From the NCBI RefSeq assembly GCF_006345805.1, contig NC_043005.1, positions 40,734,001-40,798,000 on the forward strand: 64,000 bases of DNA, in the 5' to 3' direction. The notes beneath the pieces were generated by a model, which worked only from the letters and a program-made list of their open reading frames with translations, ran no database searches and was not told the origin of the DNA. This stretch comes from Octopus sinensis. Lineage: Eukaryota. Below, one piece after another: positions 2,394-59,342 of this stretch; within the stretch, counting starts at the first letter, position 1, and each line of letters starts with the position of its first letter. The position numbers and the translations under genes are program-made.

Positions 2394-3506
2394 TTGGGTC
2401 ATCCCATAAATAATGTGATATTTTCAATTGCATGAACTAAAAGTCGTAGGGGGATGGTATAAACTGCCTGCATCAACTTGCTATAAAAGCAGGTAGTAAT
2501 TTTACCTTGTACTTATTCTTTGTGCAAGTTTTGAAAAGTGCTGCTTGATTTTTAAGTTATTTTTTCAAAGCTATAATGGAAATGACAAAGGTGCATATTC
2601 AGCATATTTTGCTTTATGAGTTCAATAAAGGCAACAACACAATGGAAAGTGCGAAGAATATTAGTGCCGTATATGGGGATTGGACAATAAGTGTAAGCCA
2701 GTGTCAGTGGTGGTTCCAGAAATCCCAAGCTGGCAACTACAGCCTAGAAGATGAGCCTCATCTCGGAAGATCTGTAGAGCTCGATGAGGACATCCTGCAA
2801 ACCCTGGTGAAACAAAATCTTATTGTAACTATTGAGGAACTAGCAGAGAAGCTTGGATTTGGTCATTCAACCATTCATCGACACCTGCATGTAGTGGGTT
2901 CCTCACAAACTTTCTGAGTCTAATCGCGTGCTGAGAGTGAATGTGTGCTCTTCTTTGCTGTCATGTCATATGAATGAACCTTTTTTTGGACTAAAGGCAG
3001 AGGTAAGGAAAGGAGAAACATTGGCTCTCCAAGCTAAAGAAAGTCTTCACTCATGTAAGGCATTACCTGTTTGGTAATACCTTACATGCTGTGAGCAGCT
3101 TGGGCAGCTTCAGTCAACGCTAGAAGAAAAACAACTGTCTTTGGTTTCAAGACAAAAGGTGTTCTTCCATCAGGCCACATACAGCGAGGATGACATTCCA
3201 AAGGCTGGAACAATTTGAATGGGAAACAATGTCCTGCTCACCATATCGCTGGACACTGCCCCATCTGATTATCATTTATTCTGCAGTCTTCAAAATCATT
3301 TGGATGGAAAAAAATAGGAATTCTGTAGACGAGATGAGAAGAGTACTGGAGGAGTATTTTTCATCATGGACTGGTGAATCTTGGAGGAGGAGCCTTGTAA
3401 AAAATGAAGGAGAGTATATTTTAGATGAAAAAAGAACTTTGTTTATCTTAATTTTGAAAAATAAAAGAAGTATAAAAAAAATCGCATTATTTATGGGATG
3501 ACTCAA
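2394..3506 (+). mobile_element. decayed mariner transposon with both TIRs
   Basis: About 31-bp TIRs (ttgggtcatcccataaataatg / cattatttatgggatgactcaa) flanked by TA. ORF 2576-2917 is a mariner N-terminal HTH region; an APSDYHLF-like remnant lies near 3255-3280. Frameshifted and shortened. Confidence 0.9.
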
Positions 3507-3998
3507 TAACATTGGTTTCAAATTTTGACACAAAGTCAACAATTTTAGTAGGCGGGGTTGATCCCTGATACTTATTTTATCAACCCCGAAAGCATGAAAA
3601 GCAAAGTTAATTTTGATGGAATTGGATCTTGGAATGTAAAGACATATGAAATGCCATTAAGCATTTTGCCCAGCATGCTAATGATTCTATCAGCCTACAA
3701 CAGAATAATAATATTAGTAAAATTTTGCCTGCTTATAATTGTTCAGTAGAAGTACCATAACATTATTTGACTTTTAGGTGGCCTAAATTTACTATAGAAG
3801 TTCAGTACTAAGTTCTTTCACTTCACTATTTATCGGATATGTAATGAAGTGACAATGAGCTATGGTCACACTGTATGAAGGCAGGTTTTGGTAGTGAGTG
3901 GCTCCACAGCACATTATATTATATTTTATTTTCTGTTCATAGTGACTTAATTAGGGATACACAGCATTGCTTCCTTAGAAATGAATTAACATATGTTA

Positions 3999-4392
3999 GG
4001 AACAGGTGTGGCTCTGTGGTAAGAAGTTTGCTTCCCCAGCACTTGGTTCCAGGTTCAATCCCACTGCATGGCACTTTGGGCAAGTGTCTTCTGCCTCAGG
4101 CTGACCAAAGCCTTGTAAGTGGATTTGGTAGATGGAAACTAAAAGAAGCCCATCTTATATGTGTCTGTGTGTGCCTTTGTATTTGTGTTTGTCCCTCACA
4201 CTGATTGACAAGCAGTGATGGTGTATTTACTTCCTCATAACTTAGAAGTTTGGACAGAGAGACTGATAGAATAAGTACCAGGCTGAAAAAGAAAATAAGT
4301 ACTGTTGTCGATTTGTTTGACAAAAATCCTTCAAGGCAGTGTCTCAGCATGGCTGTAGTCTAATGATTGAAACAAGTAAAAGATAAAAGATA
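3999..4392 (+). mobile_element. tRNA-derived SINE with CORE-like segment
   Basis: A box (tggctctgtggtaag), B box (ggttcaatccc), gcactttgggcaagtgtctt, central (TG)n, 3' end gaaacaagtaaaagataaaag. Confidence 0.8.
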
Positions 4393-4554: not shown

Positions 4555-4662
4555 CTCAATAAAGTGATATTCTTGAATGAAAATATATGTAAACTTGGAA
4601 GAAAACAAGCAAGAAGATTGATTATTTGTTGAATTTGTGTCCCTTTTTTTTTAACCCATCAG

Positions 4663-4848
4663 ACTGGAGATACTTCAAAATCAGAGGGAATTGTAGAGTT
4701 GCTGGAAACCCTAAAGAAATACACTTATATACCAGAACGAAATCTTACTGGACCCTTTATTTTTTCTGTTGACCATTGCTTTTCAATTCGAGGACAAGGA
4801 ACTGTGATGACTGGTACAGTACTTAACGGCAGTGTCTCAATCAATGAG
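4663..4848 (+). CDS. EEFSEC: eEFSec coding exon (186 nt)
   Basis: cccatcag|ACT GGA...AAT GAG|gttagt. Encodes ...GPFIFSVDHCFSIRGQGTVMTGT..., the EF-Tu/SelB domain II signature. Confidence 0.95.
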
Positions 4849-5802: not shown

Positions 5803-6115
5803 TGGCATGTAAAAAGCACCATCCGAATCGTGGCCGAAGCCAGTGCCGCCTCGACTGGCTTCCGTGCAGGTGGCACGTAAAATGCACCAATCAGACCGTG
5901 GCCGATGCCAGCTTCGCCTGGCACCAGTGCAGGTGGCACGTAAAAAGCACCCACTACACTCACGGAGTGGTTGGCGTTAGGAAGGGCATCCAGCTGTAGA
6001 AACATTGCCAGATAAGACCGGAGCCTGGTGCAGCCTTCTGGCTTCCCAGATCCCCGGTCGAACCGTCCAACCCATGCTAGCATGGAGAACGGACGTTAAA
6101 CGTTGATGATGATGA
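5803..6115 (+). mobile_element. short RTE-tail element with internal tandem units
   Basis: GGCACGTAAAAAGCACC-type units, then GGCGTTAGGAAGGGCATCCAGCTGTAG, the CCATGCTAGCATGG palindrome and a (GAT)n tail. Confidence 0.8.
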
Positions 6116-6357
6116 ATATAATGATCTGAATAATTATATTTCTTAACTGCCATATTGATTCCTGTATCTTGAGGGTACACTCGAACATGTCTTGATCATC
6201 ACTCTCTTTTCCCAACGTAGAAACCATGTATATCCCTTAGAGCAGTAGTTCTCAGCCATAGTGGTTAATATAAGATTTTCTTCTTAAAATTTGTGTACAA
6301 GAAATTGGTTATACTTCTACAATACACAACATATTTTAGCAGTTTTTTTAGTACAAT

Positions 6358-6788
6358 TCATCATCATCATCATCGTTTAGCGTCCGTTTTCCATGCTAGC
6401 ATGGGTTGGACGGGTCAACTGGGGTCTGTGAAGCTGGAAGGCTTCGTCAGGCCCAGTCAGATCTGGCAGTGTTTCTACGGCTGGATGCCCTTCCTAACGC
6501 CAACCACTCCGCGAGTGTAGTGGGTGTTTTTTACGTGCCACCTGCACAGGTGCCAGACAGAGCTGGCGAACGGCCACGAACGGATGGTGCTTTTATGTGT
6601 CACCGGCACGGGGCCAGGCGATGCTGGCAACGGACACGAACGGATGGTGCTTTTACGTGCCACCGACATGGGGCCAGACAGAGCTGGCAACCGGCCACGA
6701 ACGGACGGTGCTTTTACATGTCACCGGCACGGGGATCAGCCGAGGCTGGCAACAGACGCGAACGGATGGTGCTTTTTACGTGCCACCC
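6358..6788 (-). mobile_element. short RTE-tail element with tandem units (inverted relative to 5803-6115)
   Basis: (CAT)n, then the reverse complement of the same tail, then several ~60-bp units. Confidence 0.8.
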
Positions 6789-7250: not shown

Positions 7251-8260
7251 TTTTGCCCTCACAACCCTCAGTTGAGGAGTCTTGTCTTGTGAGTTACTTG
7301 GTGACCTCATTGGTGCTGGTGCCATATAAAAAGCACCCAATACACTGTAAAGTGGTTGGCATTAGGAAGGACACCCAACCCTAGAAACGATATCAAAGTA
7401 GATAAAGGAGTTTGTTTCAATCCTCTGACTCACAAGCTCCTCTCAAATCTTCCAGCCCTTACCTGCATGCAAAACAGACATTAAATGGTGATGGTTATAA
7501 TTGTGGGACCCTCAATGTTGCAATACATTTTGAAGTGACAAAGTTATTTCAGTTTGAACTAACTTGATCTTTGAATCTTCAGTGGAGTACTTAGTCATTA
7601 GCTCTGTTTCCTTGGGCAAATTTGGTTGAGTAATTTGCATTACATTTGTAACAGAATTCTATGTTGATAACGGTGAGACTTAATGATTTGTGCAAGATAT
7701 TCCATTCAGAAATGAAAGACTAGTCTCCATGTCCTCCACAATAAAGAAATTCATATCCATATCATGCTTAGCTGTTAAATGCAGATATGCCCTGATACTG
7801 GCTACATTTGTGATTTCTGTAGTGCCTTTATTGTGTATTTCTCATATTTAGACAAAACGCTGCAGTTGGCTGTATCTCTAAAGTAATATGTAAAATGTAT
7901 GCAGAGACTGCACACAAACAAACATGCACACCATCAGGTTTATTTTATTACTACTTGTATCAGTTTAATTTTGTGTACTGTAGTTTATTTCACTTACTAT
8001 CTTCCTCCTTTTTTGCAAATAGGGTGCCTATACCAGAAGAATCATGTATATATCAACATGCATTGGTCCAAAAAACCAGACATTGTAAATGTGTTCTGTT
8101 TATTTAGATCACCTTTGATAGAGAGTAAAAATAAAATAGAAAAGCTTAGACTATAAATATATGCAACAGCTGATATGATGATCTAAATGCATCTACTTTC
8201 ATCTTGAGGAATTGAATATCTAATTCTATGTTTGCAATCTTCCTATTTGTATATTTTCAG

Positions 8261-8344
8261 ACCATTGAAATCCCATCTCTGAAAGTGACCAAGAATGTTA
8301 AATCTATGCAAATGTTTCGTTTACCTGTTGAGAAAGTTGTTCAG
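8261..8344 (+). CDS. EEFSEC: eEFSec coding exon (84 nt, phase 0-0)
   Basis: attttcag|ACC ATT...GTT CAG|gtcagt. Encodes TIEIPSLKVTKNVKSMQMFRLPVEKVVQ, similar to human SVEIPALKVVKKVKSMQMFHMP. Confidence 0.94.
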
Positions 8345-8677
8345 GTCAGTGAAGAATAAATGTATCTATGTTATTTAATCCTCATTGAGTACACCTATAA
8401 TGAAAGGCATTCACACTCAACAATCTCACCATCTTTTTGTATGTCTAATATGTTCTTTAAGATGTTTGTGTCACATCTCTCCCATGTTTCTCACTGTAAG
8501 GGTTTATGTCATAGTAATTCCTTGGTTGTTCCAAACTGATCAGTTTCTACTTCCACATTTTGTTTAATTGGAATTTTCATTCTTTTTCCATTTTCTTTGC
8601 TTCATTTTTCTTCCTTTTTATCTTTGTCAACGGAATTCACTGTTTTATACACACAAAACACACACACTATATATATA

Positions 8678-8719
<42 letters not shown>

Positions 8720-8720
8720 T

Positions 8721-9165
8721 GTGCCGTTTGCCAGCCTCATAAAAACACCATCGAGCGTGGCCGTCTGCCAGCCTCGTTCTGGCACCTGTGTCGGTGGCAC
8801 ATAAAAAACACCATCCGAGCGTGGCCGTCTGCCAGCCTCGTCTGGCACCTGTGTCGGTGGCACATAAAAAACACCATCCGAGCGTGGCCGTCTGCCAGCC
8901 TCGTCTGGCACCTGTGTCGGTGGCACATAAAAAACACCATCCGAGCGTGGCCGTTTGCCAGCCTCGTCTGGCACCTGTGTCGGTGGCACATAAAATCACC
9001 CACTACACTCTCGGAGTGGTTGGCGTTAGGAAGGCATCCAGCTGTAGAACACTGCCAGATCTGACTGGACTGGTGCAGCTTTCGGGCTCCCCAGACCCCA
9101 GTTGAACCGTCCAACCCATGCTAGATGGAAAGCGGACGTTAATTGATGATGATGATGATGATGAT
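8721..9165 (+). mobile_element. young RTE-tail element with a 63-bp VNTR
   Basis: Near-identical 63-bp units start at 8781, 8844 and 8907, and a fourth (8970) runs into the shared tail and (GAT)n. Confidence 0.85.
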
Positions 9166-9341
9166 ATTGAAATGTATGAAAAGCCAAGGGCTTTATGGAT
9201 GCAAAACCCTGGGTAACCCAATGAACCAGCCATAACTCTTTCTCTAAATATATATATATATTCAACTTTTTTGTTATTTCCTTGTTAAGTTTTCTTACCA
9301 CTTTTGCTTTCTTAGTTATTCCCCCACCCCACTCTTGTCCA

Positions 9342-9463
9342 ACCAATGATGACTAAACTCTGCGCAAATATGAAGTATGTCCTTCAAGTGTGTCTGGCTC
9401 CAATGATAATCCTTTGTTGAGCCAACAGCTTGAACATACACTGTTTTAAGAGTGTTCTGAGGT
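9342..9463 (+). ncRNA. intronic box C/D snoRNA/scaRNA-like RNA, copy 1
   Basis: Box C ATGATGA at 9346-9352, box D CTGA at 9457-9460, terminal acc/ggt stem and a putative D' ATGA. Has an internal hairpin; 40 nt are identical to copy 2. Confidence 0.75.
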
Positions 9464-10498
9464 AATATGCTAATCCTATCAATATTAATAAGTTTTTAAA
9501 AAAATGTTAAATGTTACACTGAAGCCACAATGGATTTTGCCACAATTGTCATGATTTTTAGTTAGCAACTTCAGAAGAAATATAAGGAATGACATCAGGA
9601 CTGTTTGTGAAACTGTTAAAGGTATTGAACATTGTATACAGAGAACGTGCTGAGTGTTCAACAATGGTTATTCACTCAAATTTAGGAAACTTTGTTAGAT
9701 CATGAAAAAGATGATAGCCCAAGTTGTTTTTGGAGGGTAGCCATCTGGGCCTTTTGGGCTCATGTTGACAACTGCACTGTTTAATACCTTCCTCATCTGT
9801 GCGACCATGCTGCTGTACATATGATGGAAATGGAGGTGACTCGAAGTGAACCTTTTCAACGTCAGAGAAATGCAAGGTACCAACAAGTTAACAACTGAAT
9901 AGTTCATTGAACTACATTAGTCTGATGATAGTGTTTTCAGTGTTCACACTTCAGAAGCACTATAAGCCACCATAGCAACCATTACATTTTATGGAAAAAA
10001 TGGGCCTGATAGTTAACTTCCACAAGCAGACCATTTGTGAATGGTACACTGTATCCCCCCAACACACCTGCTTATTCACTTTCTCAATACAACAGCAAGA
10101 AGCTATATCTTCCTTTCTAATTCCCATACTTGAACATTATCATTTCTAGTGAATGCTTAACTACTATCTACTGGACAGTCTGTATTTCCACTCTTCTGTC
10201 TAGGTGTTAGTCATGGACTTCATACAGCTGATACATTGAAACAGTGGAAATCTTTTACATCCAATGTCTGTTGAAGATCTTTTTACTCACCTGTTTAAAA
10301 AAAGAATTATGTACATGCAAATCTAACACCAGCAGCATTGAATCCACCCTAAATCATCTTCTATAATCAACTGTCTCTTCTACTTATTCAACTGAATTGT
10401 GCAATTTGTTTTTCTAATTTACTCTTTCAATCACTTTCTTTCCTTTGGAAGTTTTCTTACCTCTTTGCCTCTCTTAGTTTTTTTCCCCTCTTATTGCA

Positions 10499-10606
10499 AC
10501 CAATGATGACTAAACTCTGCGCAAATATGAAGTATGCTCATCAACTATGTCTGGCTTCAATGAGCCAACAGCTGGGGCATACAGTGTCTTGAGAGTGCTC
10601 TGAGGT
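10499..10606 (+). ncRNA. intronic box C/D snoRNA/scaRNA-like RNA, copy 2
   Basis: Box C ATGATGA at 10503-10509, box D CTGA at 10600-10603, terminal acc/ggt stem. Same guide segment as copy 1, and a hairpin with a compensatory change relative to it. Confidence 0.75.
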
Positions 10607-11089
10607 AATGCTGCAACATATTCCCTATACTTTTACCAAAGGAGATACAATGCTATTATTTCTTAGTGAGCCTATTAGAAAAGATAATAGTTCTGGTTTA
10701 TCTTTTCAGTATTTTGTATTGCAGCACAATATCAAGTGTGTATTTGTGTGTGTGATAAGTGAATGAACAATTTTCCACTACTACTCTTGTTCTTTAAATC
10801 AAATTTCTCTGTTAAAAATTGTATTGTAAATAGTTGTTTACTCAAATATATTTTCTTTCTTTTTACATTTCCTCATTAATTGGTTCTGACCAGTTTGCAG
10901 CAGTATTGTCACAAAAACAAATTGACTCTAGTAAAGTTGAGTCAGTTTTTTGTTTTTTTTATATTTTTGAAGAGAATCAAGATGTTGTTAGAGAGAAGCA
11001 TGTATTGAATGATATTAATGCATTTACCCTCATGGGTTCCACAATGGAAATGAGATGTTCATTGAAGAGAACATGCAAAAAGATCAAGG

Positions 11090-11253
11090 TCCAATCTGAT
11101 CTGGCAGAGTTTCTACAGCTGTATGCCCTTCCTAATGCCAACCACTCTGAGAGTGTAGTGGGTGCTTATACATGCCACTGGCACGAGGGCCAGTCAGGCG
11201 GTACTGGCAATGGCCACGCTCAAATGGTGTTTTTTATGTGCCACCTGCACAGG
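11090..11253 (-). mobile_element. fragment of the same RTE-tail family
   Basis: ctacagctgtatgcccttcctaatgccaaccactctgagagtgtagtgggtgc, the reverse complement of the family core. Confidence 0.75.
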
Positions 11254-11688
11254 AGATAATTTTGTTAATTAGCTAACCTAACCTAATTAACTGGCAGTGA
11301 GTGTTCTGAAAGCATAGTTGCAAGAATAAAAACTGAGTGGAAAATGTGTTTAGAGTTATTCTGCTGCAAAAATTAAAAAGTACAAATGATCCCTCTAGGT
11401 TAGCAGTAATTCCCAATAACAACTGACTCAGACTCTGGTGACTCACCCAACCTTTGACAGCATGGAAAAGCAGATTTAAAATGATGATGATGGCAATGGA
11501 AAGTATTAAGAAATAGTTAAAAGGCTAAAATCCTGTTATCTTTAATTTATTCCTCTCTTGATCTGACTTTGTAAGCTTATTGCTGCTGCCTAAGACCATG
11601 GAAATTTTAGCTGTAATAAGCAATTAATGTTTTGTAACTCTTGAAATTTTGTATTGCCTATATTTTAATATTTCATCTTATTTTGTAG

Positions 11689-12373
11689 GGTGACCGGGCT
11701 GGTATTTGTGTGACACAGTTTGATCCTAAACAGCTTGAGCGTGGCCTTGTGTGTTCTCCAGGTTCCCTACCTACTATTTATGCTGGAATAATCTTTGTAA
11801 AGAAGATCCCTTACTACAAAGGAACTGTATCCACTAATGCCAAGTTCCATATAACAATGGGTCATGAAACTATCATGGCCCATGTCACATTTTTTGGCAC
11901 TGAAAGTGCTTCTGAACAAGATAATACTTTAGATCTTTCAAAAGAATATAATTACCAAGAAGAATTATTAGAAAAGCAACCTCAACAGCCTAATCTCTGC
12001 CAATATGCTCTCTTGGAATTTGAAAAGCCCATTACTTGTTTGGCATCCTGTCTAGTGATTGGCTCCAAACTTGACAGTGATATCAATGCCAATGTGTGCC
12101 GGATTGCATTCCATGGACAACTATTAACTTATTACACTGACTCAAAGTACAAAGAGAGTAAACTATCAGAACTGAAGATATTTAAAATCAAGTCCAGGGA
12201 AGGTAGGATCGAACGAGTTACTGATGCTCATTCACTAATTGGCAAGGATTTATTCAAGAAAGAAACAAATATACAAGCCTTTGCCAACCTCAAAGTAACA
12301 TTATCAAGTGGCGAGAATGGAATTATTGAGGGCAGTTTTGGTCAAAGTGGCAAAGTAAAAATCCGTATTCCAA
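11689..12373 (+). CDS. EEFSEC: eEFSec coding exon (685 nt)
   Basis: ttttgtag|GGT GAC CGG...CCA A|gtaagt. Encodes GDRAGICVTQFDPKQLERG...KFHITMGHET...LFKKETNIQ...FGQSGKVKIRIP; largely coincides with ORF 11710-12381. Confidence 0.96.
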
Positions 12374-13332
12374 GTAAGTAAACCTTTTTTTCTTAAATAT
12401 ATTCTTTACAATGACAGCTTCATATTTCCAAATATCACCAACACATTTCTTAAGACTAATTAAGGACAAAGGAATTGTTTATACCATTTTTCTAAAATTA
12501 TTGAACAGATAAAGATAAAATGGTTGAGAGTACAAAGCAAATAGTGAAAGGCAACTAGTCTGAGGGATTTATATTATTTTACTGTCAGCTCTACTGTCTT
12601 TAAAAATATGGCTACTTGTATTTTTAATGTACTGTACAATTTAGTAGATATAACACAAGGGCTAAGCTCAGCATTCATTTATTGAGATTTAAGCACCAAA
12701 GTATATCTCACTTTTATTGAATTATCTTCTTTCTCTTCTACTTATGTTATTATTTCACTGTAATTAAGGGAGGAGTGAGTCAGTAGTTTATCAAGGGGAG
12801 CTACAGTGCCAACTCTGCGATACTAGCCCCAATTCCTGAATTAAGAAACTGTCAGTCAATTCATCTTGGCCATCATTGTTTGATGTAAAATATTATCATT
12901 TAATTTTTGTCTTCCCCATACATGCAAGTTGCTGTTCTTCATTGACCCCTTCCCATGCTTTCCTCTGCTACAGGGTCCTTCCAGATGGCACTCCTTTATC
13001 TAATTATCATCCTTCACATTATCACATCTCCATACTCATGTAGAATTATTTCTTTTACATTATAGTTGATTCAAATTAACAAAATTCTGGATATAACAGA
13101 ATTGAAGAAGGGAAAGAGTAATGCTAAAGGTTCATTTAAGATGGTGCAAAAACTCTGAAACAAAATATCATTATTTACAAATCACTTTAGCAAAAGGAAT
13201 GGTAATTCAGGCAATATCTTTTTATATTTCCCCCAGTATATTACTGGTATTGCCATCACATGAATGAAAAGTAAAATCATAATTAAAATTTCAAATCAGT
13301 TTCTCATCTAAGTTTTTTTGTTTTTGAAGATA

Positions 13333-13935
13333 AATCAAAATCAAAATCAAATCAAATCAAAACAAATCAAAATAGATGAACATCTTGTGAAGACCTGTTG
13401 AGGCAAGTGAAAATCAAAATCAAATCAAATCAAATCAAAACAAATCAAAATAGATGAACATCAATGGAATTTGTATCTTTGTGGTACCAGTGCCGGTGGC
13501 ATACAAGAAAACCATCCGAACGTAGCCGTAGCCAGTACCGCATCGACTGGCCTCCATGCTGTGGGCACGTAACAAACACCATCCGATCGTGGCCGTTCGC
13601 CAGCCTCATCTGGCACCTGTGTCGGTGGCACATAAAAACACCATCCGAGCGTGGCCGTCTGCCAGCCTCGTCTGGCACCTGTGTCGGTGGCACATAAAAA
13701 AAAACACCATCCGAGCGTGGCCGTTCGCTAGCCTTGTCTGGCACCTGTGTCGGTGGCACAAAATCACCCACTACACTCTCGGAGTGGTTGGCGTTAGGAA
13801 GGGCATCCAGCTGTAGAAACACTGCCAGATCTGACTGGCCTGGTGCAGCCTTCGGGCTCCCCAGACCCCAGTTGAACCGTCCAGCCCATGCTAGCATGGA
13901 AAGCGGACGTTAAATGATGATGATGATGATGATGA
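13333..13935 (+). mobile_element. young RTE-tail element with (AAATC)n head and ~63-bp units
   Basis: Duplicated AAATC-rich block at 13333-13462, then units nearly identical to 8781-8990, then the shared tail. Confidence 0.85.
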
Positions 13936-16830: not shown

Positions 16831-17612
16831 GTATGTGTGCTAGTTTATCATCTTATCCTATGTTTGTGTCGACAACTAGAATTAATCATTTGGTTGCACA
16901 GAAATAGCAATAAGTCTATAAAAAAAGTATCTGGCTCCTCAATACATGAATTAAAAGTATATATATATATATGAGTTATTATATACATATATATAATAGT
17001 ATATATGAATCATGATTTGTCTTTAAAAGAATTTCTGAATTTTAACATGAAGAGAGAAAATGCTGATTTGGCAACCAAAAAAGATTGTGATGTCAAATTT
17101 TTTATTAATTCTAGATATTTATGGATGTAGAATTAATCTGATTTATAGAACTTGCCTACTTCTTACCAGTCAGAAGCTAAATGAAATCTAACTTTTTGTA
17201 GTCCTTTGGGTGTCTTCAAACAAATTATTTTGAAGTCACACAAATACATGCACAGTACCTAGATATATTGTAACCTTTTGGTTGTGGCCATGCTGGGGCA
17301 CTGCCATTGATTGATGGGTGGCTCCCATATAGTCAACCCACCTAAGTATTAACAAGGCTCAATGTTACATAACTTCAATGATCAGAGAAAAATCAGTGTT
17401 TTCTTTGTGAAGAGATCAATTACTGTGTAACAAGCTTTCTTTTATTTTCATAGTCTAAAAAGTACCTTTATCTTGACATTTTGCTCTCACCTGGATGATG
17501 CTCTATAAAATGACCTCAGTAATCACTTCAGACATTTAGTTGATTTGTTTTCTTTTATATATGTATGTGTATGTGTATATACATATATTTATTTGTTTAC
17601 ATATTATTGCAG

Positions 17613-17773
17613 ATGGTTTGAGTGAGGAAGTCCTTCAGAGATATTCCGGTTCAAAGAAGAAGGGAAAAACTGCTGAGGCTGCTTCACCTGGAGCAGATCA
17701 AGAACCAGTGAAGATCATTTTATCATTTAAACGATATATTTTTGATCCAAAGAAAAAAATGATACAGTCATGA
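17613..17773 (+). CDS. EEFSEC: eEFSec terminal coding exon
   Basis: attgcag|AT GGT TTG... ends LSFKRYIFDPKKKMIQS-TGA, similar to human LTFKRYVFDTHKRMVQSP. The phase-1 junction with the previous exon is in frame. Confidence 0.95.
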
Positions 17774-18628
17774 CACGAAGGATAAAGTGTCTTCTAGAGA
17801 GATTTGTTTATGTTTGTGTGAATTTTCTCCAGCAAATGCTTTTGCATCTATTTTTAAAAATATGTTAGGCACTATTCCTCAACCTCACACTCAATGTTCA
17901 CTTTGAATTTTTGCTGAGAAATGAGAAAATGAGGTTGTAATGGGGTCTAGTGTCAGAAATAATGGTTCAGTTATTGTATTTTTTTGGTGAAGCAGTAAAG
18001 AATAACGATGGCTGTGGAATTGATATATATTTGCTAGTTGAGAAGAGCAAGAACTATGTTAACAACAGTAAAAGAGATGGGAAGATGATGATACTGTTGT
18101 TGTTTTTTGTTTGCGTGTATGTGTGTATGTTTTGACCGGTGTATAATGTATATTTGCAATGTTGCTGCTTTGTTTCAAATAGAATGCAATATGCCGATGC
18201 AATTGAACTTTGTTGAAGGTGAGCACTTGATTATAGCCAGAATATTTTCTGTTACTAGAGAGGAATCTTTGTCTTTAAGATGCAGTTTTTTAACTATGTT
18301 ATTGATTTGTAGTTGTTGTGAGAGATAATCAAGTTGAAAATGTTTGTTATGGTTTTTAGTTGAGGATTTGAGAAAGTCTAGTTTTATATTTCTTTTAGCT
18401 GTCTATTGATGATGTTAGAGGACAGTAAGATGCAAAGTTCCTATCTGAAAGATGTTTGCAAGGCTTTTATTCATGGGGCAGTGAATTTAGTTTTTATATG
18501 GATGATGTATGTTCAAAAGGCTTTTGAGGAGTGAAATGAGGGGTTTGTCACAATATGAATATGTTTAACTGGAGATAATGCTGATTGATCTTAAAAGATA
18601 CTACTAATGTGATAGAGGGTAGGATTGA

Positions 18629-18859
18629 GGGTGGCGACCTGGCAGAAATGATAGCATGCCGGGTGAAATGCTTAGTGGTATTTCATCTGCTGTTACATTC
18701 TGAATTCAAATTCTGCCATGGTCGACTTTTCCTTTCATCCTTTTGGGGTCAATAAATTAAGTACCAGTTACACACTGGGGTCAATGTAATCGACTTAATC
18801 CCTTTGTCTGTCCTTGTTTGTCCCCTCTATGTTTAGCCCCTTGTGGGCAATAAAGAAAT
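18629..18859 (+). mobile_element. third tRNA-derived SINE family
   Basis: Head gtggcgacctggcagaa, B-box-like gaattcaaattc, body cctttcatccttttggggtcaataaattaagtacc. Other copies: about 3512-3695(-), 26751-26939(-), 42000-42200(-), 54260-54470(+), 56140-56350(-). Confidence 0.8.
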
Positions 18860-19811
18860 GAGAGGGTAGGATTCTGGTTGATTTGACTCTACACAGAACA
18901 TACATACATCTATTTTGTCCACTGCCTGCAGTAGCCTTATCACACACTTCTTCATTAAACCTTGCTTCTGTTGCCATGTACACATTCTTGGTCTCAGCAT
19001 CATTTCACATCATTTTCATATATAATTCTATCCTTTAATGTTCTCATGTTACTTCAACAATTCATTATTTTCTTCATCCGAGTGTCTTACGTGCTGCAAC
19101 ATTCACCCCATCAATAACAAACAGGATTACCTGAGGCTCTTTATTTGTATCTTCTTTACCACTTCAATCCAGAACTTTCCTTGTTTGGCAGTCTTAATAT
19201 TGAGCTTAAAGATTTCTTGGAAACAAAACCCACAAATTCTGTTGATCCATCCATCCAGTCTCTGATTCTGTTCATACTTCTGATACCCATTATATGCTGC
19301 TGCTATAATCATTCTGAGGAATGAATCTTTCTCAAACTCGGAGCAAACCAGGCTTGGGCTTTGTCTCCTTCGCAGGAAGACTAATTTCAAGGTACACATC
19401 AACACCAAATGTTTCCTTTGTCAGAACTATCTGAAAGCTTTCATCCACAGCAGGAAAACTGGAATGCCTGACAGGACAACTTTACTGACAAATTTTCACT
19501 TTCCTCATATCTTTGTTAACCAGTCAATATCCGTATGTAAAAAAATGCTATAGCAATCTGAATTTGTTCAATTTCAAAAAAGTATTTTCAATGTTCACAC
19601 ATCTGAAATTGCTGCACCCTGCAGCTGAGATAATATTGGCCTCAAAAAAGCAATATAAATGGTACTATGCTGGTCTGGCAAATTGACCTACAGGAAAGAA
19701 GCCTTACATTACATTCACAACCTATTCTATTTAGAATTATCTAGGATTCAGCCAGAAGCTAATATTGGGATTTTTTTCTATTTGGTTGCACCTGTGGAAA
19801 TTTCAAAGATT

Positions 19812-20198
19812 ACTCTTTTACATTTCAGTCATTTGACTGTGACCATGCTGGAGCACTGCCTTTAGCCGAGCAAATTGACCCCAGGATTTATTCTTTGTAA
19901 GCCTAGTATTTATTCTATCGGTCTCTTTTGCCAAACCGGTAAGTTACGGGGACGTAAACACACCAGCATCGGTTGTCAAGCGATGTTGGGGGGACAAACA
20001 CAGACACAAAAACATACACACACACACACACACATATATATATACACGACGGGCTTCTTTCAGTTTCGGTCTACCAAATCCACTCACAAGGCTTTGGTTG
20101 GCCCGAGGCTATAGTAGAAGACACTTGCCCAAGGTGCCATGCAGTGGGACTGAACCCGGAACCATGTGGTTTGCAAGCAAGCTACTTACCACACAGCC
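19812..20198 (-). mobile_element. tRNA-derived SINE, same family, well preserved
   Basis: Reverse complement has A box gtggctgtgtggtaag, B box gggttcagtccc and gcaccttgggcaagtgtctt. Other copies: about 25180-25520(-), 32563-32750(+), 34240-34625(-), 55620-55925(-), 61760-61975(-). Confidence 0.82.
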
Positions 20199-23100
20199 AC
20201 TCCTACACCTATTAAAAATTTGGTGTATTGATGTAATTTTCCATGCTGAATCTCAGGAGATATTTCAATTTTTCCAGAAAATTTATAAAAAAAATTATAG
20301 ATGTTTAAAGTTTGATCATTTTTACCCAGTTAGAAAAAAGGATTTGGAAACTGTCATTTTGTGAGTTGTCAACTGTAAACAAATGAAATATTGGCAGAAT
20401 TTTGCTTTATGCACACTATGTAACCCCTTATAACTTATTTTTTGGAATTTTCAGAAAATTTTTGTGAATTTGTATCCTACACATGGGGTTTCATACAATT
20501 ATACAAAAACAAAAAAAAATTGGAGGTGTGTAATTTAAGGCCTGTTCAGTTGTTATTTTTTGTACATCTCATGACCACTTCAATGCGTAGAATATATTTG
20601 TCAACACATGTACTTCCTTGCAGACAAGAGTTCATGCTTGGCTCATTACTATGGAAACAGGCATGAATGTGTCTGTGGCATACTGGCTAAAGTTACCCAA
20701 AACTTGCAAACTTTAAAAGCTATTAACTCTTTATTTACTGATTTGTGATGAAAATGAATTTTATGACAATGATTAGCATACAAAACAACACCATTACACC
20801 AAATATAAAGTCAATGGGAACAGAAACTGTAAAGTGGCAGCCAAACAGAAAAGATCCAATATCGTAACAGTTTGAAATGTAACCTCTTCAGATCTGCTTC
20901 CACTATGCAATCTAAAGTAAATCCTTGGTCATCTCTCCATAATAAAATCCAGTCTTGTTGACTTATATAGTTAAACTGATCCTAAATTGCTTCCTCTTTC
21001 ATTACTTGTACCATTAGAATCACTACAGATACCAAGCTGGAGTCCAGTTATGTTAATCTTTTTGCAAGCTATACTGACATACAGATTTTCACCTTGTTCA
21101 CTGTGTTGGCACTATTTCACTTACCTCAGTTAAACTGAAGTGCTTTATCTCATCTGTCAACACTTCATGCATTAGAATTCATTTCCTACTCTATCCAGTA
21201 CTTCTATCAACAATATCCACTTCCAGCTACTAATGCCATTGTTATTTCCCTTCTCTGTATCTACACAGAATACATTTATTAAAGATACACTGCACCTTAT
21301 GTAGCTAAAAGTTAACATTCTGCAACATCTATTAGTAGCTTTCTCAGCATTGTTTACACCACAGTTCATATTATAACAATCACTGCAAATAACATAGCCA
21401 CACTGCAACTAAGTGCTCTAGTTGACTATTTCTCAAAATTGAGCCTCCAAAAACCACACAAAATATGCACCTTCTACTTTCACCATGATTTTCATTGCTT
21501 CTTTCCATCATTGGTGATGTCCTTGTCAGAGCCAAATGCACACACAGCACTCTTAAAACTTGATTCCAGATGTTTTTTGAACCCGTTTGTGAAGCAATTT
21601 AATTTCAATGATGTTAGAGAGCAAACTCTAAAAGGGTCCTTTTAGCACTTTTTCTCACATTTCTTTCTGGGATCTTTGGATGACTAGTCAGTCTTTACTA
21701 TTAAGGCTAGTGACTAAAGGTAATTCAAAATGATTTCCTGTTGATGATAGGAAAATATCTAATTTGGTGCAATGCAGTTTTATTTCAAGTGTTGTTACCA
21801 ACTCTAAGAGTATATGTTTTACCAATGAAATATTGTTTTCAGCTTGTAAAATCAAATTCCAGTTTGATATCTATGAAAATATCAGTTAACATATTTAAAC
21901 AATATTGAAAAAAGTTGCTCTCTATCCCTTCTATGAACCTGTCCAGAGACAGAAGAGTTGCAATGACTGAGCAAACCAAGTGATATGAATCTGTGATCAC
22001 TGTGGTACTGTACTGATCCCTACACACTGAAGCTTCCCTACCACCATTTGATTGAGATTAATAGAGAATAGGTTAAGATGGAGCTCCAAACTAACTAGAT
22101 AATAATTTGGTTTGTTTGTTTCAGTGCTGAAATCAAATTCTCTCGTACAAAGAAATATACTCAAAACATAGGCATAATCATATTTTACACAATATTTATC
22201 TATATTTTCAAATGGTTTTTCATTGTAAATTTATAAGGAAAAAATATCTTTATATAATGCTTTATTTACAAGTTTTACATACTCTCTCAAATATTTCAAA
22301 GTCAATCAATTAGAAATTTCAAACAAAATACTTTCTTACATATTTTGGGGAAAGGAAATAGGGAATTAGTGATGTCAATGCCTGTTCTATTAACTGGAAA
22401 TAAAAATAATTGCAACAAAACTCTTTACACTGAAAACTTAACACTGCATCAAGGCAGCAGTCTTTGATTTAGAAGGGTCCTAAAACATTTTTATTCAGTA
22501 TTACTTTCCCTTCTTATTTAAGATTACATTCCATAAAACCTTAATGGCTATAGCATTACTTCACAGGTGTTAAAAGTAAAACAGTTAAACACTGGAAGAA
22601 CAGATTTGTCTGGTGAAATAAAGTGGGGTTGGGTTACATTCCTTTTTTTTAAGGAATCCCTGCTGGTTTAAATACTCTTTGTATTTCTTTGTTTCTACAT
22701 TCCTACAAATTTTATATGATTTTTGAGTTTTCAAAGAAAAATAAATCTTAATTAAAAAACAAATCTTTGTAATGACTTTGCATTCCATTCTTCTTTCCCA
22801 AATATTCTACAGAAATTTTGTTTTAAACTACGAAATATTTGACACCAGATTTGAACATAGTTAAAGTAAGAATGACAATATCTAAATAAGTCAGTTTTTC
22901 ATTTTCAAATCGAGTCAGCTCATAGAGCTGGTGAGGAGGCAATTTTCATGCCTTTTTTCCCAAAGGCATCTTGTAAAATAACCATAAATGTTCACTCTAT
23001 ACACATTCACAGTGAATATCGAAGTAAAAAAAAAAACATCAATAAACAAACAAACAAATCCTATTTTAATATTAACATTCCTGCAACATCTAAATCCAAT

Positions 23101-36760: not shown

Positions 36761-38857
36761 CTGAAAGAATAGTTGGATTTAATTGTTAATATTTTCAGTA
36801 TACAAATTTTCTATTTCTTTTTCTTAACCTTTTCTATTCAGGTTTTCTATATATGCAGGTTGTTTCATGTGGACAGATGTACAGTTTTTTCCAAGGGACC
36901 TCAACACACTAATTCTTCTAAACAAACATTGAGACATGTCTTAACTCCAACATACCAAACAGTTCTATAACAATGACTTCAAACTTTTCACTGTAAGAAA
37001 AACATAAGCACAAAAAATTTTCAGTGAAACAAACTAATTTAACTAAATATTTTCATTAAATTTCTTCTAGAAGAAATAACAACACATCAGAGATGGTGGC
37101 AGATGTCTGAAAACAGTTAATCATGGAAAGAACATTTTCTGCTACTTTGCCAAGAAGATCATGTGATTAACATTTAGAAGACTTCACAAAACGGTCACTT
37201 GCATAAAGTGTAAGCAAGCTTAATGCTAGTTAATTTCACTGTAATCCATTTAAGAATTTACACAGCAGGTTTAAAATGCATTACTCGATGACAAAATTAA
37301 ACGAGGAATTGAGATTCAAAGAATCCATATAATGTTGAAGTAGAGTGCTCAGTGTAAAACACGGTGAGCTTTAGAGTGACAGATCAATTCCCATGACAAC
37401 AAAAAGGAAACAATTATGTACTTGTTTTGAAGAAACAAAAGGAAAAAAAGCATCAGAAACACTAGAGTGATGGTGATGATTTGCAGATAGCAAACGGAGT
37501 ATTTCAATTATCATAATTAGATTCAATGAGCAGAGAACAAAAACTTTTTCAATAATTAGGGAATCATTTAATGGTATTAATTCTCTGACATTCTGATGCA
37601 TCATGTTGGTTTTGAAACACTTCACCACCCATGTGCTATTGGCATATCAGCAAGTTGTGCTCCTGAAGTTGATTTAATCTTTTAGAACAGACCAAATTCT
37701 CTTTGAAAAAAAAAAAATGAATTTTGTCTAAAATCAAGCAAATGTATATATTCCAGAAAAGTTAATTTTATTCTATAATTTTTGCTTGCATTAAGAAATG
37801 AAAGTGTGTGTGTCTGTGTGTGCACATGAGTGCGTGCTTTGCACTAGCAAAAGTTAAAGAATTTAGCATTTCAAGAATATGCTAAAGCAATGAAATTTTT
37901 AATATTTAAATTTTTGTTCTTTATTTCAAATAGCCACAGCTGTGCACTTAAATTGTTTTGTGTTTAAGTTCTTTGTACAAAACCGTAAGCAAGTGTTTTC
38001 TACTGCAACCTCATATTGATGAGTGTCTTATGAGTGGGATTCAGCAGGATAAAAAGTGCTTAGAAGCCTTTTGTGTGTGCGTGTGTTCACACAAGTTTTG
38101 AGTATATATGTGTGAGAGCATATATATCATTGAATTGCGTCCCTTCATGTAAAAAAGTAACTTAGCTATTAAATGAATAGAAATTAACAAAATAAGCACC
38201 ATACTGAGATAAATATTAAGTTTAATATCATCAACTAGACCCTTGAATGTACTGTCTCAGCATGGTCACAGTTCAATGACTGAAAAACAGTAAAAAATAC
38301 AAATTTAATCTTATTCTCTGATTAACAAAACTTCACTTTTCTTTTTAGAATTTTCCATGTACTTTTTTTGAACTAGCTTTATTTCTGTTTTGTTCTCTAA
38401 GATTGTTTTAAATTTGATTATATGCATAGGATCTGTTATATATTTTTCTAAAGACTCGTCTGATATCTCTTCCAAAACACAACAGTGAAAAACAAATTTA
38501 TTGTCTCAATCAATTTTCAGATGTTTTAAGCATTGTACGTTTCTATTTAAACACAAATTTAACAGAATATTTTTTTAACTAGTGAAAATGTGATTGGTTA
38601 CTGAAAATCTTTTCTTTACAATCATTATAACATTAAATTAGGGCAGAAGATAAGCAGAATCATTAAGTTGTTGGAGGAAATGTCTTGTAGCATTTGTAGA
38701 CTTCAAATTCAGCCAATGTCAAGTCTGCTTTCATTCTTTTGGGGTCATTTCAACTGACTTACTCCTCTTACAAAATTTTTGACCTTATGTCAATATCAGC
38801 AACTATTATAATACTAAATTATAATAGAGAATCGGATCGCAGCTAATCAAGTCTTAA

Positions 38858-56830: not shown

Positions 56831-56867
56831 TAGTTAGCTGCTACAAGGGTAAAGGCTTTAGATAGAA

Positions 56868-59342
56868 ATAACTACAGGGGTATCAAGCTGTTACAGAGGT
56901 AACTACAAAGGTATCAAGCCAATCATGAAAATTACAGAAAGAATTATATCTCAACTGATTAGGGATAGAATTAAGCTACATGAGATGCAGTTTGGTTTTG
57001 TTCCAGGGAGAAGTACCACAGATGCCATCTTCATAGTGAGACAATTGCAAGAAAAGTATTTGACCAAAAGTAAACCATTGTACTTAGCCTTCGTTGACTT
57101 AAAGAAAGCTTTTGACAGGGTTCCCCACTCTCTTATTTGGTGGTCTCTAAGGAAGCTAGGAATAGAGGAGTAGCTTATTAGAGCCATTCAAGCCATGTAC
57201 AGTCAGTAAGGTGAGAGTCAGCTTTGAATACAGTGATGAATTTAGCGTACAAGTTGGAGTTCACCAGGGTTCAGTTCTTAGTTCACTCTTATTCATCATA
57301 GTTCTCTAGGCCATATCAGAGAAATTCAAAACTCAATGCCCATGGGAACTACTACATGTTGATGATCTTGCTCTTATTGCAGAATCTGAAGCAGAATTGG
57401 AGAAGTTCAGGGTTTGGAAACAAAACCTGGAATCAAAGGACCTTAAAGTTAATTTAAAGACTAAAGTTGTTAGCAAGAAAACAAATAAAACTCTCCTTCC
57501 ATCAGGTAAATGGCTCTGCTCAATATGTAGGAAATGAGAGGGATGCAATTCCATTTGCTGCACCAAGTATAAGCTATGGATGCCTAAGAGATGTAGTAGA
57601 ATCATAAGTAGGTTAACAGATAGGATCGCTTTCATGTGTCACAGATACACTGGAACAATAAGTACTAAGGGCACGAGGGACTTAAACTCTCTCAAATGCC
57701 CAAGAGGCTCTCTTGAGGTAGCAGATAGTTTCTGCTATCTAGTTGACCAAATTAATATAGGTGGTGGATGCTCTGAAAGTATTGTTTCTAGAATAAGAAT
57801 AGGATGGAAGAAGATCGGATAGCTACTACCTCTGTTGGACATAAGAGGACTCTATCGCAGAGTGAAAGGCAGATTGTATGATGCCTGTGTGAGAGCAGCT
57901 ATACTACATGGAAGTGAGACATGGGCTAGGACTGCAGAGGACATGCATAGACTGGAGAGGAATGAAGGGAGTATACTCTGCTGGATTTGCACAGCAGTGT
58001 TCATGACTGACAAAGCTCAACTGTGTTGAGAAAAAAGTTAGGTGTAAGAGGGATTCAAGGTGGCATGCAGGAGAAGAGCATGCATTGGTTTGGACATGTG
58101 ATGCGTATATGTGAAGACAGCTGTATAAAGAAGTGCTGAGCACTAAAAGTGGATGGTACCTGTAGAAGGGGGAGACCCAGGAAGACATGGGATGAAGTGG
58201 TGAGGACTGATCTTAAGATGCTGGAGCTCACAAAGGAAATGACAATGGACCGAGATGTTTGATGATATGAGGTTCTAGAGAAGACCCACCCATATCAATG
58301 AAACTGAGTGCTAGAAGAGTTGTGTCCCACCCACATGTAACAACAAACTTTTCACACACCCTACTCCAAGAAACCAAACTATATCTTCTCTTCTAAACAG
58401 CATCTCTCTCACATTTCCTTTTCATAAACTATGATTGTCACTGCAATCCCCATTCCCTACCTTCACCTTCTTGGCAACACTTGACCGTGCATATTATGAC
58501 CTTCGTATCTCGCTTTTCTTTACTGTACCATCACATCTATGCTCTAATATTTGCTACTTGTAAATATATCCTGGCACTTCACCACCTCTCTCCTGCTCTC
58601 TCTTACACTTTTGCTGTTTCCTACTCTCCCCCCCCCTTTCCCTTGCTCTTCCCTCTGACTAGGTAGCCATGTATCTCCTTTACAGCAGCACACCTATTTC
58701 TGCTCTCATTCTTGGTTACTCTCTCTCACTGGATAACCATGTACCTCTTCTATAGCAAGACGCCTATTTCTGCTCTCATTCTTGGTTGCTCTCTCTCTCT
58801 CACTGGATAACCATATACCTCCTCTATAGCAAGACACCTATTTCTGCCTTCCTATCTCTCTGTCACACATCATTTGATACTAGATTACCTCCTCTAATAC
58901 CCACTCTGTTATAGCAAGACACCTGTTTCTGCCTCTCTATCTCTTTGTCACCCTATAACTTTTCATCATCTGACACAAGTTCCCCTCCTCCAATGCCCCT
59001 ACTCCTCTCATAATTCCTTGTCTTGCGAGTTACTTGGTGACCCTACCAGTGCTGGTGTCACATAAGAAGCATTCAGTCCCCACTGTAAAGTAGTTGGAAT
59101 TTGAAAGGGCATCCAGCTGTAAAAATCATGCCGAAACTAACCTTGTCTGTGCTAGTGTGATGTAAAAAGTACAGAGTCCACTCTGCTGAGTGGTTGGTGT
59201 TAAGAAGGGCAACTAGCTGTAAAAACTCTGCCAAAATAGACACAGTAGCGTAGGGTAGTTTTTCTTCCTGGCTAGCTTCTGTGAACTATTCTACCCATGC
59301 TTGCATGGAAGATGGATGTTAAACAATGATGATGATGATGAT
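56868..59342 (+). mobile_element. 5'-truncated RTE-clade LINE: RT, long 3' UTR and (GAT)n tail
   Basis: ORF 56925-57173 reads QFGFVPGRSTTDAIFIVRQLQEKY...FVDLKKAFDRVP; GVHQGSVLS and PWELLHVDDL follow. Ends gcatggaagatggatgttaaacaatgatgatgatg. Confidence 0.92.

Follow-up and report, generated by a model that had tools for sequence, protein, structure and literature searches.

A probable pair of intron-encoded box C/D guide RNAs in the eEFSec gene of Octopus sinensis

Results

Two box C/D units share one intron of eEFSec

The stretch of DNA analyzed here, referred to below as the window, comprises 64,000 nucleotides (nt) of the Octopus sinensis genome (NC_043005.1, positions 40,734,001 to 40,798,000 of the forward strand), matches O. 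sinensis chromosome CM016867.1 with 100% identity, and carries on its plus strand part of the gene for eEFSec, the selenocysteine-specific elongation factor (XP_029640997.1). Amino acids 1-93 of this protein match nothing anywhere in the window, and the first coding exon or exons must therefore lie upstream of it. A single eEFSec intron houses two units with the boxes and closing stem of box C/D RNAs, here called copy 1 and copy 2, both in the sense orientation of the gene (Table 1). The original prediction, made from the letters of the window, had placed the pair in an eEFSec intron, and the protein match together with the exon–intron boundaries bears this out. The box C, box D, and acc/ggt stem that it described are likewise present in both units, as is the shared run that it reported, positions 9340-9379 and 10497-10536 being identical at 40 of 40 nt.

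The units stand out from the rest of the window. With up to three mismatches allowed, a 31-nt core was found at two sites only in the 64 kb, against 0 in shuffled sequence. A generic box C/D filter, applied to both strands and defined as RUGAUGA followed 50-140 nt downstream by CUGA and at least three flanking Watson-Crick pairs, returned three candidates, two of which are these copies, against 0.1 in shuffles. A covariance model (R1) built from the two copies scored copy 1 at 161 bits and copy 2 at 134.6 bits. Membership of a high-copy repeat, an outcome that the original prediction regarded as fatal to itself, was rejected: self-BLAST finds the unit at only two sites in the window, and the unit is syntenic in three genomes. 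Its claim that neither open reading frames (ORFs) nor repeats account for the pair also held, as only two copies occur in the 64 kb and the neighboring element resembling a short interspersed nuclear element (SINE) is separate from them.

Architecture of the putative RNAs

In both copies, the closing stem ACC/GGU is invariant and leaves a single unpaired A ahead of box C, as in the consensus of the Rfam family RF00283. A 17-nt antisense element lies between box C and a D'-like AUGA, and a hairpin-forming insert follows, measuring 65 nt in copy 1 and 51 nt in copy 2 owing to a 14-nt insertion in copy 1. Among six sequences, namely the two copies in each of three Octopus species, the D'-like AUGA is invariant, whereas the candidate C' box reads UAAGA, UGAGA, or UGUGA; an alternative C' candidate, AAUGA at the hairpin tip, is poorly placed. 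The segment before box D was considered as a second guide and rejected, since 4 of its 19 positions differ between the copies and it has no meaningful complementarity to U4 or U6. This stretch would moreover be too short for guiding if a C'-like motif is allowed for, and it probably does not guide. The 17-nt element between box C and the D'-like AUGA is the only antisense element under constraint.

Both copies are present in three Octopus species

The eEFSec proteins of Octopus vulgaris and Octopus bimaculoides were found in the 90% protein cluster of O. sinensis eEFSec, and a search of their gene loci with R1 recovered both copies in the orthologous intron of each species (Table 1). The intron flanking the copies can be aligned between species, which identifies them as syntenic genes rather than recent repeat insertions, and their presence at orthologous sites in all three species places the duplication before the split between O. 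sinensis and O. bimaculoides. Relative to O. sinensis, the O. bimaculoides locus carries lineage-specific insertions of ~560 nt between the copies (18393-18957 of locus L010) and of ~2.6 kb downstream of copy 2 (19657-22309), and the host intron is structurally fluid around the conserved RNAs. Further searches added little to this picture. A related octopus Logan contig (L001-L003) has only the last 234 nt of the host intron in common with it, a pseudo-ORF protein search of the host intron for orthologues gave no match, exact look-ups of pseudo-ORFs in the window matched no record, and metagenome pattern scans for the unit returned no match. As far as can be seen from the sequences compared, the C/D gene would be specific to the cephalopod or octopod lineage.

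A 5' module is invariant within and between species

Substitution rates were measured between O. sinensis and O. bimaculoides, with the intron around the copies as background (94/1509 substitutions, 6.2%), to which the P values refer. The two RNAs together have changed at 8 of 238 positions (3.4%, P = 0.04), with 2/113 in copy 2 (1.8%, P = 0.025) and 6/125 in copy 1 (4.8%, P = 0.33). Conservation is concentrated in the 5' 40 nt of both copies, which show 0 changes in 80 positions (0%, P = 0.006), whereas the upstream co-duplicated blocks are not reduced (7/84, 8.3%, one-sided P = 0.85) and both copies outside the 40 nt have changed at 8 of 158 positions, against the 6.2% background. The 40 nt cover the stem strand, box C, the 17-nt antisense element, AUGA, and the first hairpin bases, and they are identical in all six sequences; over the whole tree ~14 neutral substitutions would be expected and none was seen (Poisson P about 9e-7, uncorrected for the window having been chosen post hoc). 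None of the six sequences has a change in box D or the 3' stem either. Paralogues differ at none of the 40 nt, against 22% elsewhere in the duplicated unit (a run of this kind has a permutation P of 0.003). Additionally, the longest stretch of the aligned 1.9 kb over which the two species are identical, 83 nt at 10494-10576, falls in the 5' part of copy 2.

Gene conversion is able to homogenize paralogues; it is nevertheless insufficient here, given 0 interspecies differences in 80 sites. These rates point to purifying selection on the box C, antisense, and D' guide module of both copies. The overall pattern, with boxes, stem, and one antisense element fixed and the rest drifting, looks like that expected of a single-guide box C/D RNA. 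The original prediction had held both copies to be functional and under selection, and the selection stands only for this module; the rest of copy 1 evolves at the neutral rate.

The hairpin following D' is a variable spacer

The original prediction had further described the hairpin as structurally conserved, citing GUAUGU/ACAUAC in copy 1 and GUAUGC/GCAUAC in copy 2 as a compensatory pair. In O. sinensis both positions of the pair do differ between the copies (U-A versus C-G at alignment columns 41/95), whereas the same columns in O. bimaculoides copy 2 form a C.A mismatch. By parsimony, the C.A would be the intermediate and the G would have arisen in the O. sinensis/vulgaris lineage, giving a single two-step compensation. 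Pairing in copy 1 of that lineage is improved by two more changes (columns 92 and 94). Copy 1 of O. bimaculoides has lost a core G-C pair through G57A, and two more changes disrupt its apical helix.

The covariation of the two window copies carries no statistical weight, 243 of 500 shuffles doing as well, and with the four distinct sequences 240 of 500 shuffles were as good; the covariation contribution in RNAalifold is only -0.5 kcal/mol. Folding energy gave no better result, as none of the four RNAs outperformed its shuffles (z from -1.57 to +0.39; -1.57 and +0.10 for the window copies). The hairpin exists, structural selection on it is not demonstrable, and it is best described as a variable spacer. 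The earlier description of a structurally conserved hairpin is therefore not sustained, and in the alignment of the orthologous introns the boxes proved conserved while the covariation was indistinguishable from shuffles.

A small segment was duplicated

Homology between the copies spans 9274-9466 and 10436-10609 and ends 3 nt past the 3' stem of the RNA. Upstream of each RNA lie a pyrimidine-rich block, 81% identical between copies over 42 nt, and a linker with 53% identity whose length varies by indels between copies and species. The original prediction had called the co-duplicated flank visibly diverged, a description that fits the linker better than the block. Over the tree, the block has accumulated 15 differences against about 15 expected. 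Between species, the flank and the copy 1 hairpin change at the neutral rate, yet paralogues are still ~80% identical there, so neutral paralogue divergence can be estimated at about 20%, or ~3.5 times the species divergence. Longer homology would still be visible at this divergence, so the duplicated segment was only ~193 bp and ended at the 3' end of the RNA. A larger tandem duplication of ~1157 bp was rejected accordingly, the diagonal signal being weak (7 shared 7-mers against a mean of 1.6). Transcription by RNA polymerase III, or independent transcription of the small nuclear RNA (snRNA) type, from the upstream block was rejected as well, given an internal TTTT in copy 1 and the neutral evolution of the block. 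The pair arose when this ~193-bp segment, composed of 68 nt of upstream flank and the RNA, was duplicated well before O. sinensis/vulgaris separated from O. bimaculoides, and the guide module was then kept unchanged in both copies.

The antisense element as a possible U4 guide

No Rfam family reached its gathering threshold in the window or in the related loci. In a permissive search, both copies had the same best match, RF00283, aligned end to end with 16.9 bits for copy 1 and 18.4 bits for copy 2; the Rfam scan proposed with the original prediction thus returned nothing at threshold and a shared best match below it. RF00283 is a box C/D model whose consensus CCACUGCGCAAU, followed by CUGA, is fully complementary to nt 5-15 of human U4 snRNA and sets U4 C8 opposite D'+5. 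The modification Cm8 of U4 is known and has been assigned to the guide scaRNA17/MBII-119, a small Cajal body-specific RNA (scaRNA). The Rfam label of RF00283, 'SCARNA18', does not match SCARNA18 of HGNC, which is U109, an H/ACA scaRNA for pseudouridine 6 of U1, and annotation may be misled by it.

The octopus antisense element has CUGCGCAA(A) in common with RF00283 and forms nine contiguous Watson-Crick pairs with human U4 nt 4-12 (-15.2 kcal/mol), which only 19 of 2000 shuffled guides matched. Provided that the RNAs function, both may target the U4 snRNA 5' end, an assignment that we regard as tentative and as having somewhat less than an even chance. If U4 is the target, the pair would be the octopus counterpart of the vertebrate U4-Cm8 guide, the modified position perhaps being shifted by 1 nt.

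The likeness to RF00283, which represents MBII-119, the mgU4-8 domain of vertebrate scaRNA17, extends to the layout, with a box C/D frame and one functional antisense element upstream of D', to the shared core complementary to the U4 5' end, and to a similar 3' part (GUGU..UGAGA..G..CUGAGG). However, RF00283 makes 11 contiguous pairs with U4 and is predicted to direct C8, whereas the octopus element would direct G7 owing to the extra A before D'. Between D' and the 3' part, the hairpin of RF00283 takes up ~21 nt and that of octopus 50-65 nt, and the octopus RNA is predicted to be stand-alone and intronic. Tycowski and colleagues are said to have reported in 2004 that the vertebrate U4-Cm8 guide forms one domain of a composite scaRNA that is transcribed independently and capped. 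The intronic Cajal body C/D scaRNAs of vertebrates offer a further comparison, as they too are intronic snRNA guides with a long apical hairpin between the box pairs. Their Cajal body signal is a terminal helix with consecutive G.U/U.G pairs from GU/UG repeats. By contrast, the octopus hairpin consists mostly of Watson-Crick pairs; in O. sinensis, copy 1 has two wobble pairs side by side and copy 2 has none.

Other elements in and around the window

The host intron also contains, at 8715-9165, a SINE-like element that is unrelated to the C/D unit; its internal repeats are in tandem and 63 nt long, and its tail is (ATG)n. Among its many relatives in the window are 5803-6125, 6358-6787, and 13476-13935, and an inverted partial copy lies in the host intron at 11087-11253. 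The copy at 8740-9165 is missing at the orthologous site of O. vulgaris, which makes it a recent insertion in O. sinensis. The intron between exons 1809-1907 and 4660-4848 contains at 2549-2914 (plus strand) a helix-turn-helix domain of a Mos1/mariner-type transposase (PF17906, E = 2e-16), marking a decayed mariner-like element. Well outside eEFSec, reverse-transcriptase ORF fragments at 56862-58026 (plus strand; PF00078, E = 1e-11) represent a remnant of the long interspersed nuclear element (LINE) type. The third candidate of the generic filter, at 37473-37588 on the plus strand (GGTGATGA ... CTGA), has no Rfam support and is probably due to chance; a sub-threshold SCARNA7 match at 37704-37844 was dismissed as a (GT)n microsatellite. 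In the eEFSec locus of Mytilus coruscus (L009), positions 3981-4042 and 10159-10223 match SECIS_1 (RF00031) with 34.4 and 32.2 bits, against a threshold of 35. These matches thus lie within a gene for the elongation factor that depends on selenocysteine insertion sequence (SECIS) elements, and they could reflect a repeat family or coincidence.

Table 1. Features of the eEFSec region and of the two putative box C/D RNAs (window coordinates unless a locus is named)
Feature	Position	Strand	Details
eEFSec coding exons	about 1159-1335, 1809-1907, 4660-4848, 8258-8344, 11689-12375, 17606-17770	+	match to XP_029640997.1 amino acids 94-551
Exon 5' of host intron	8258-8344	+	ends ...VEKVVQ (...SMQMFRLPVEKVVQ)
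Host intron of eEFSec	8345-11688	+	GT 8345-8346, AG 11687-11688
Exon 3' of host intron	11689-about 12375	+	starts GDRAGICV (GDRAGICVTQFDP...)
Upstream flank of copy 1	9274-9341	+	pyrimidine-rich 42-nt block 9274-9315, diverged linker 9316-9341
Putative box C/D RNA, copy 1 (122 nt)	9342-9463	+	stem ACC 9342-9344, box C AUGAUGA 9346-9352, box D CUGA 9457-9460, stem GGU 9461-9463
Antisense element, copy 1	9353-9369	+	CUAAACUCUGCGCAAAU; U4-complementary core CUGCGCAAA at 9360-9368
D'-like AUGA, copy 1	9370-9373	+	apical hairpin 9375-9439
Unique spacer between copies	9464-10498	+	no other copy in window; would be body of a long RNA 9342-10606
Upstream flank of copy 2	10436-10498	+	block 10436-10477 ending TCTTAG, then linker
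Putative box C/D RNA, copy 2 (108 nt)	10499-10606	+	stem ACC 10499-10501, box C 10503-10509, box D 10600-10603, stem GGU 10604-10606
Antisense element, copy 2	10510-10526	+	17 nt, CUAAACUCUGCGCAAAU; core 10517-10525
D'-like AUGA, copy 2	10527-10530	+	hairpin 10532-10582
Copy 1 orthologue, O. vulgaris	L011, 17943-18069		identical to O. sinensis
Copy 2 orthologue, O. vulgaris	L011, 19102-19214		identical to O. sinensis
Copy 1 orthologue, O. bimaculoides	L010, 17360-17486		6 substitutions
Copy 2 orthologue, O. bimaculoides	L010, 19086-19198		2 substitutions

Discussion

The intron of eEFSec probably contains two paralogous genes for intron-encoded box C/D guide RNAs of ~122 and ~108 nt. The original prediction of a duplicated intronic C/D pair is right at its core and overstated for the hairpin. 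Both RNAs would be transcribed as part of the eEFSec pre-mRNA. As inferred from the class, box C and box D would then meet beside the 3-bp ACC/GGU stem to form a kink-turn, which would recruit SNU13, NOP58, NOP56, and fibrillarin and protect the RNA while exonucleases trim the excised intron. An unannotated gene of an otherwise ordinary kind, a lineage-specific box C/D guide pair, is thus the probable content of this intron.

Several observations weigh against this interpretation. Both copies lie ~1 kb away from either splice site of the host intron, an atypical placement; vertebrate intronic small nucleolar RNAs (snoRNAs) usually lie about 70-80 nt upstream of the 3' splice site. The closing stem of both copies has only 3 bp, and C/D closing stems usually have 4-5 bp. 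No convincing conserved C' box is present at the candidate site in the six sequences. Outside the 5' module, copy 1 has changed at 6 of 85 positions, a neutral rate against the 6.2% background, and this copy may be decaying. A search of the eEFSec genes of Mytilus coruscus, Haliotis rufescens, Patella vulgata, and one further invertebrate yielded no homologue. The Rfam scores fall far from the RF00283 gathering score of 40 bits, and matches of 17-23 bits to unrelated families were common in a control kilobase, so the resemblance to RF00283 is not significant by score. As for the target, nine contiguous pairs are at the low end for a guide, the extra A before AUGA sets D'+5 opposite U4 G7 and C8 at +6, and the pairing was computed with human U4 in place of octopus U4.

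These observations give some room to the explanation that no stable RNA is made, the locus being a duplicated intron segment under no selection or two snoRNA pseudogenes, with the boxes and the 40-nt identity as remnants of a once functional gene or as products of gene conversion. We consider this unlikely. It would accommodate the near-neutral divergence outside the 40 nt (~20% between paralogues and 8/158 between species), the neutral upstream flank (7/84), the lack of a thermodynamic or covariation signal, the atypical position in the intron, and the uniformly sub-threshold Rfam matches. Gene conversion fails to account for 0/80 interspecies differences (P = 0.006) or for invariance over a tree on which ~14 substitutions were expected. 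Furthermore, the stretch without changes occupies exactly the parts that a C/D guide needs, namely stem, box C, antisense element, and D'; box D and the 3' stem have not changed either, and paralogue homology ends 3 nt beyond the 3' stem of the RNA.

A very unlikely alternative is a mainly cis-acting role of the units, either as cassette 'poison' exons or as splice switches sensitive to small nucleolar ribonucleoproteins (snoRNPs), the C/D snoRNP masking a GU as in SNORD86/NOP56. The upstream block does contain a branch-point-like CTTAC (A at 9297 in copy 1) 18 nt before AG, a pyrimidine tract, and TCTTAG, with AG at 9314-9315 and 10476-10477, and the 3' end of the RNA reads as a donor, CUGAG|GUAAU, at 9461|9462 and 10604|10605. 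These sites would delimit pseudo-exons at 9316-9461 and 10478-10604, both with in-frame stops, as a poison exon would have. The 3' splice-site-like flank matches the quality of the real sites of the gene, GAG|GUAAU is a plausible though weaker donor, AGTTTTCTTACC, TCTTAGTT, and CTGAGGTAAT are invariant in all six sequences, and intronic C/D snoRNAs acting in cis on host splicing have precedent. However, the whole upstream block evolves neutrally, indels have changed the linker length, and the donor has no G at +5, unlike every real donor of the eEFSec gene. CUGA followed by GGU is, moreover, donor-like for trivial reasons, and the truncated isoforms to be expected were not found in the protein collection, which is a weak test. 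Use of the flanks as splice sites is a minority possibility in our analysis. A further donor-like hexamer, GUAUGU in copy 1 (9375-9380) and GUAUGC in copy 2 (10532-10537), follows GAA and starts the hairpin; with the upstream AG, GUAUGU would bound a 60-nt exon that is open only in O. sinensis copy 1. A coding micro-exon at 9316-9375, using this open frame, was rejected on account of linker indels between copies and species and an in-frame stop in copy 2.

The presence of two units in one intron raises another alternative, which we judge quite unlikely, namely that function resides in a ~1.27-kb long noncoding RNA with snoRNA ends (sno-lncRNA; 9342-10606), capped by a snoRNP at both ends, rather than in two small RNAs. 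One snoRNA per intron is the usual layout, and end-trimming of an intron with two snoRNAs yields a sno-lncRNA capped by both snoRNPs, so this mechanism predicts exactly the product 9342-10606. The two same-sense C/D units are kept together in three species, and the end modules that such an RNA would require are invariant, on the box C side of copy 1 and the box D side of copy 2. On the other hand, the spacer diverges by 5.9% between O. sinensis and O. bimaculoides, equal to background, and tolerates the ~560-nt insertion in O. bimaculoides; invertebrates and plants release multiple snoRNAs from one intron by endonucleolytic cleavage, as is well established. Either internal cleavage would free two small RNAs, or the long RNA would accumulate.

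An intron with two guide RNA genes could also yield more than the guides themselves, and we regard as unlikely, although worth stating, that the two snoRNPs protect a ~1.27-kb sno-lncRNA after splicing and/or that the D box and stem double as a 5' splice site downstream of the strong 3' splice-site-like flank. In the latter case, snoRNP assembly would decide between skipping, which would give productive eEFSec mRNA plus snoRNA, and inclusion of a stop-containing exon. Known sno-lncRNA loci (the SNORD116 region; SNORD49A/B in SNHG29) likewise have two same-sense C/D snoRNAs in one intron, whereas in octopus the spacer is no better conserved than background, the host gene encodes a translation factor in a mollusc, and the long RNA is a prediction. 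The cis-acting SNORD86 in NOP56 and SNORD2 in EIF4A2 resemble the octopus arrangement in that a C/D unit overlaps or adjoins splice-site-like intron sequence; in octopus, the cryptic sites are putative and eEFSec offers no obvious feedback logic to snoRNP supply. If true, the sno-lncRNA would be the first reported outside mammals, and the splice switch would tie the capacity for selenoprotein synthesis to snoRNP supply.

For the preferred reading, two separate guide RNAs, the value lies in annotation, and current understanding is unchanged. If expressed, the pair would constitute unannotated cephalopod guide RNAs that Rfam misses at curated thresholds. The locus also provides a clean natural case of small-segment snoRNA duplication inside an intron, in which the guide module appears fixed and the remainder drifts. 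Bench work would be most worthwhile on the link to U4 and on the layout of two units per intron. An expressed pair would qualify as a candidate for the protostome counterpart of the vertebrate U4-Cm8 guide, and it would open the question of whether the U4 5' end, the part that forms U4/U6 stem II, has its methylation guided alike across bilaterians or shifted by 1 nt.

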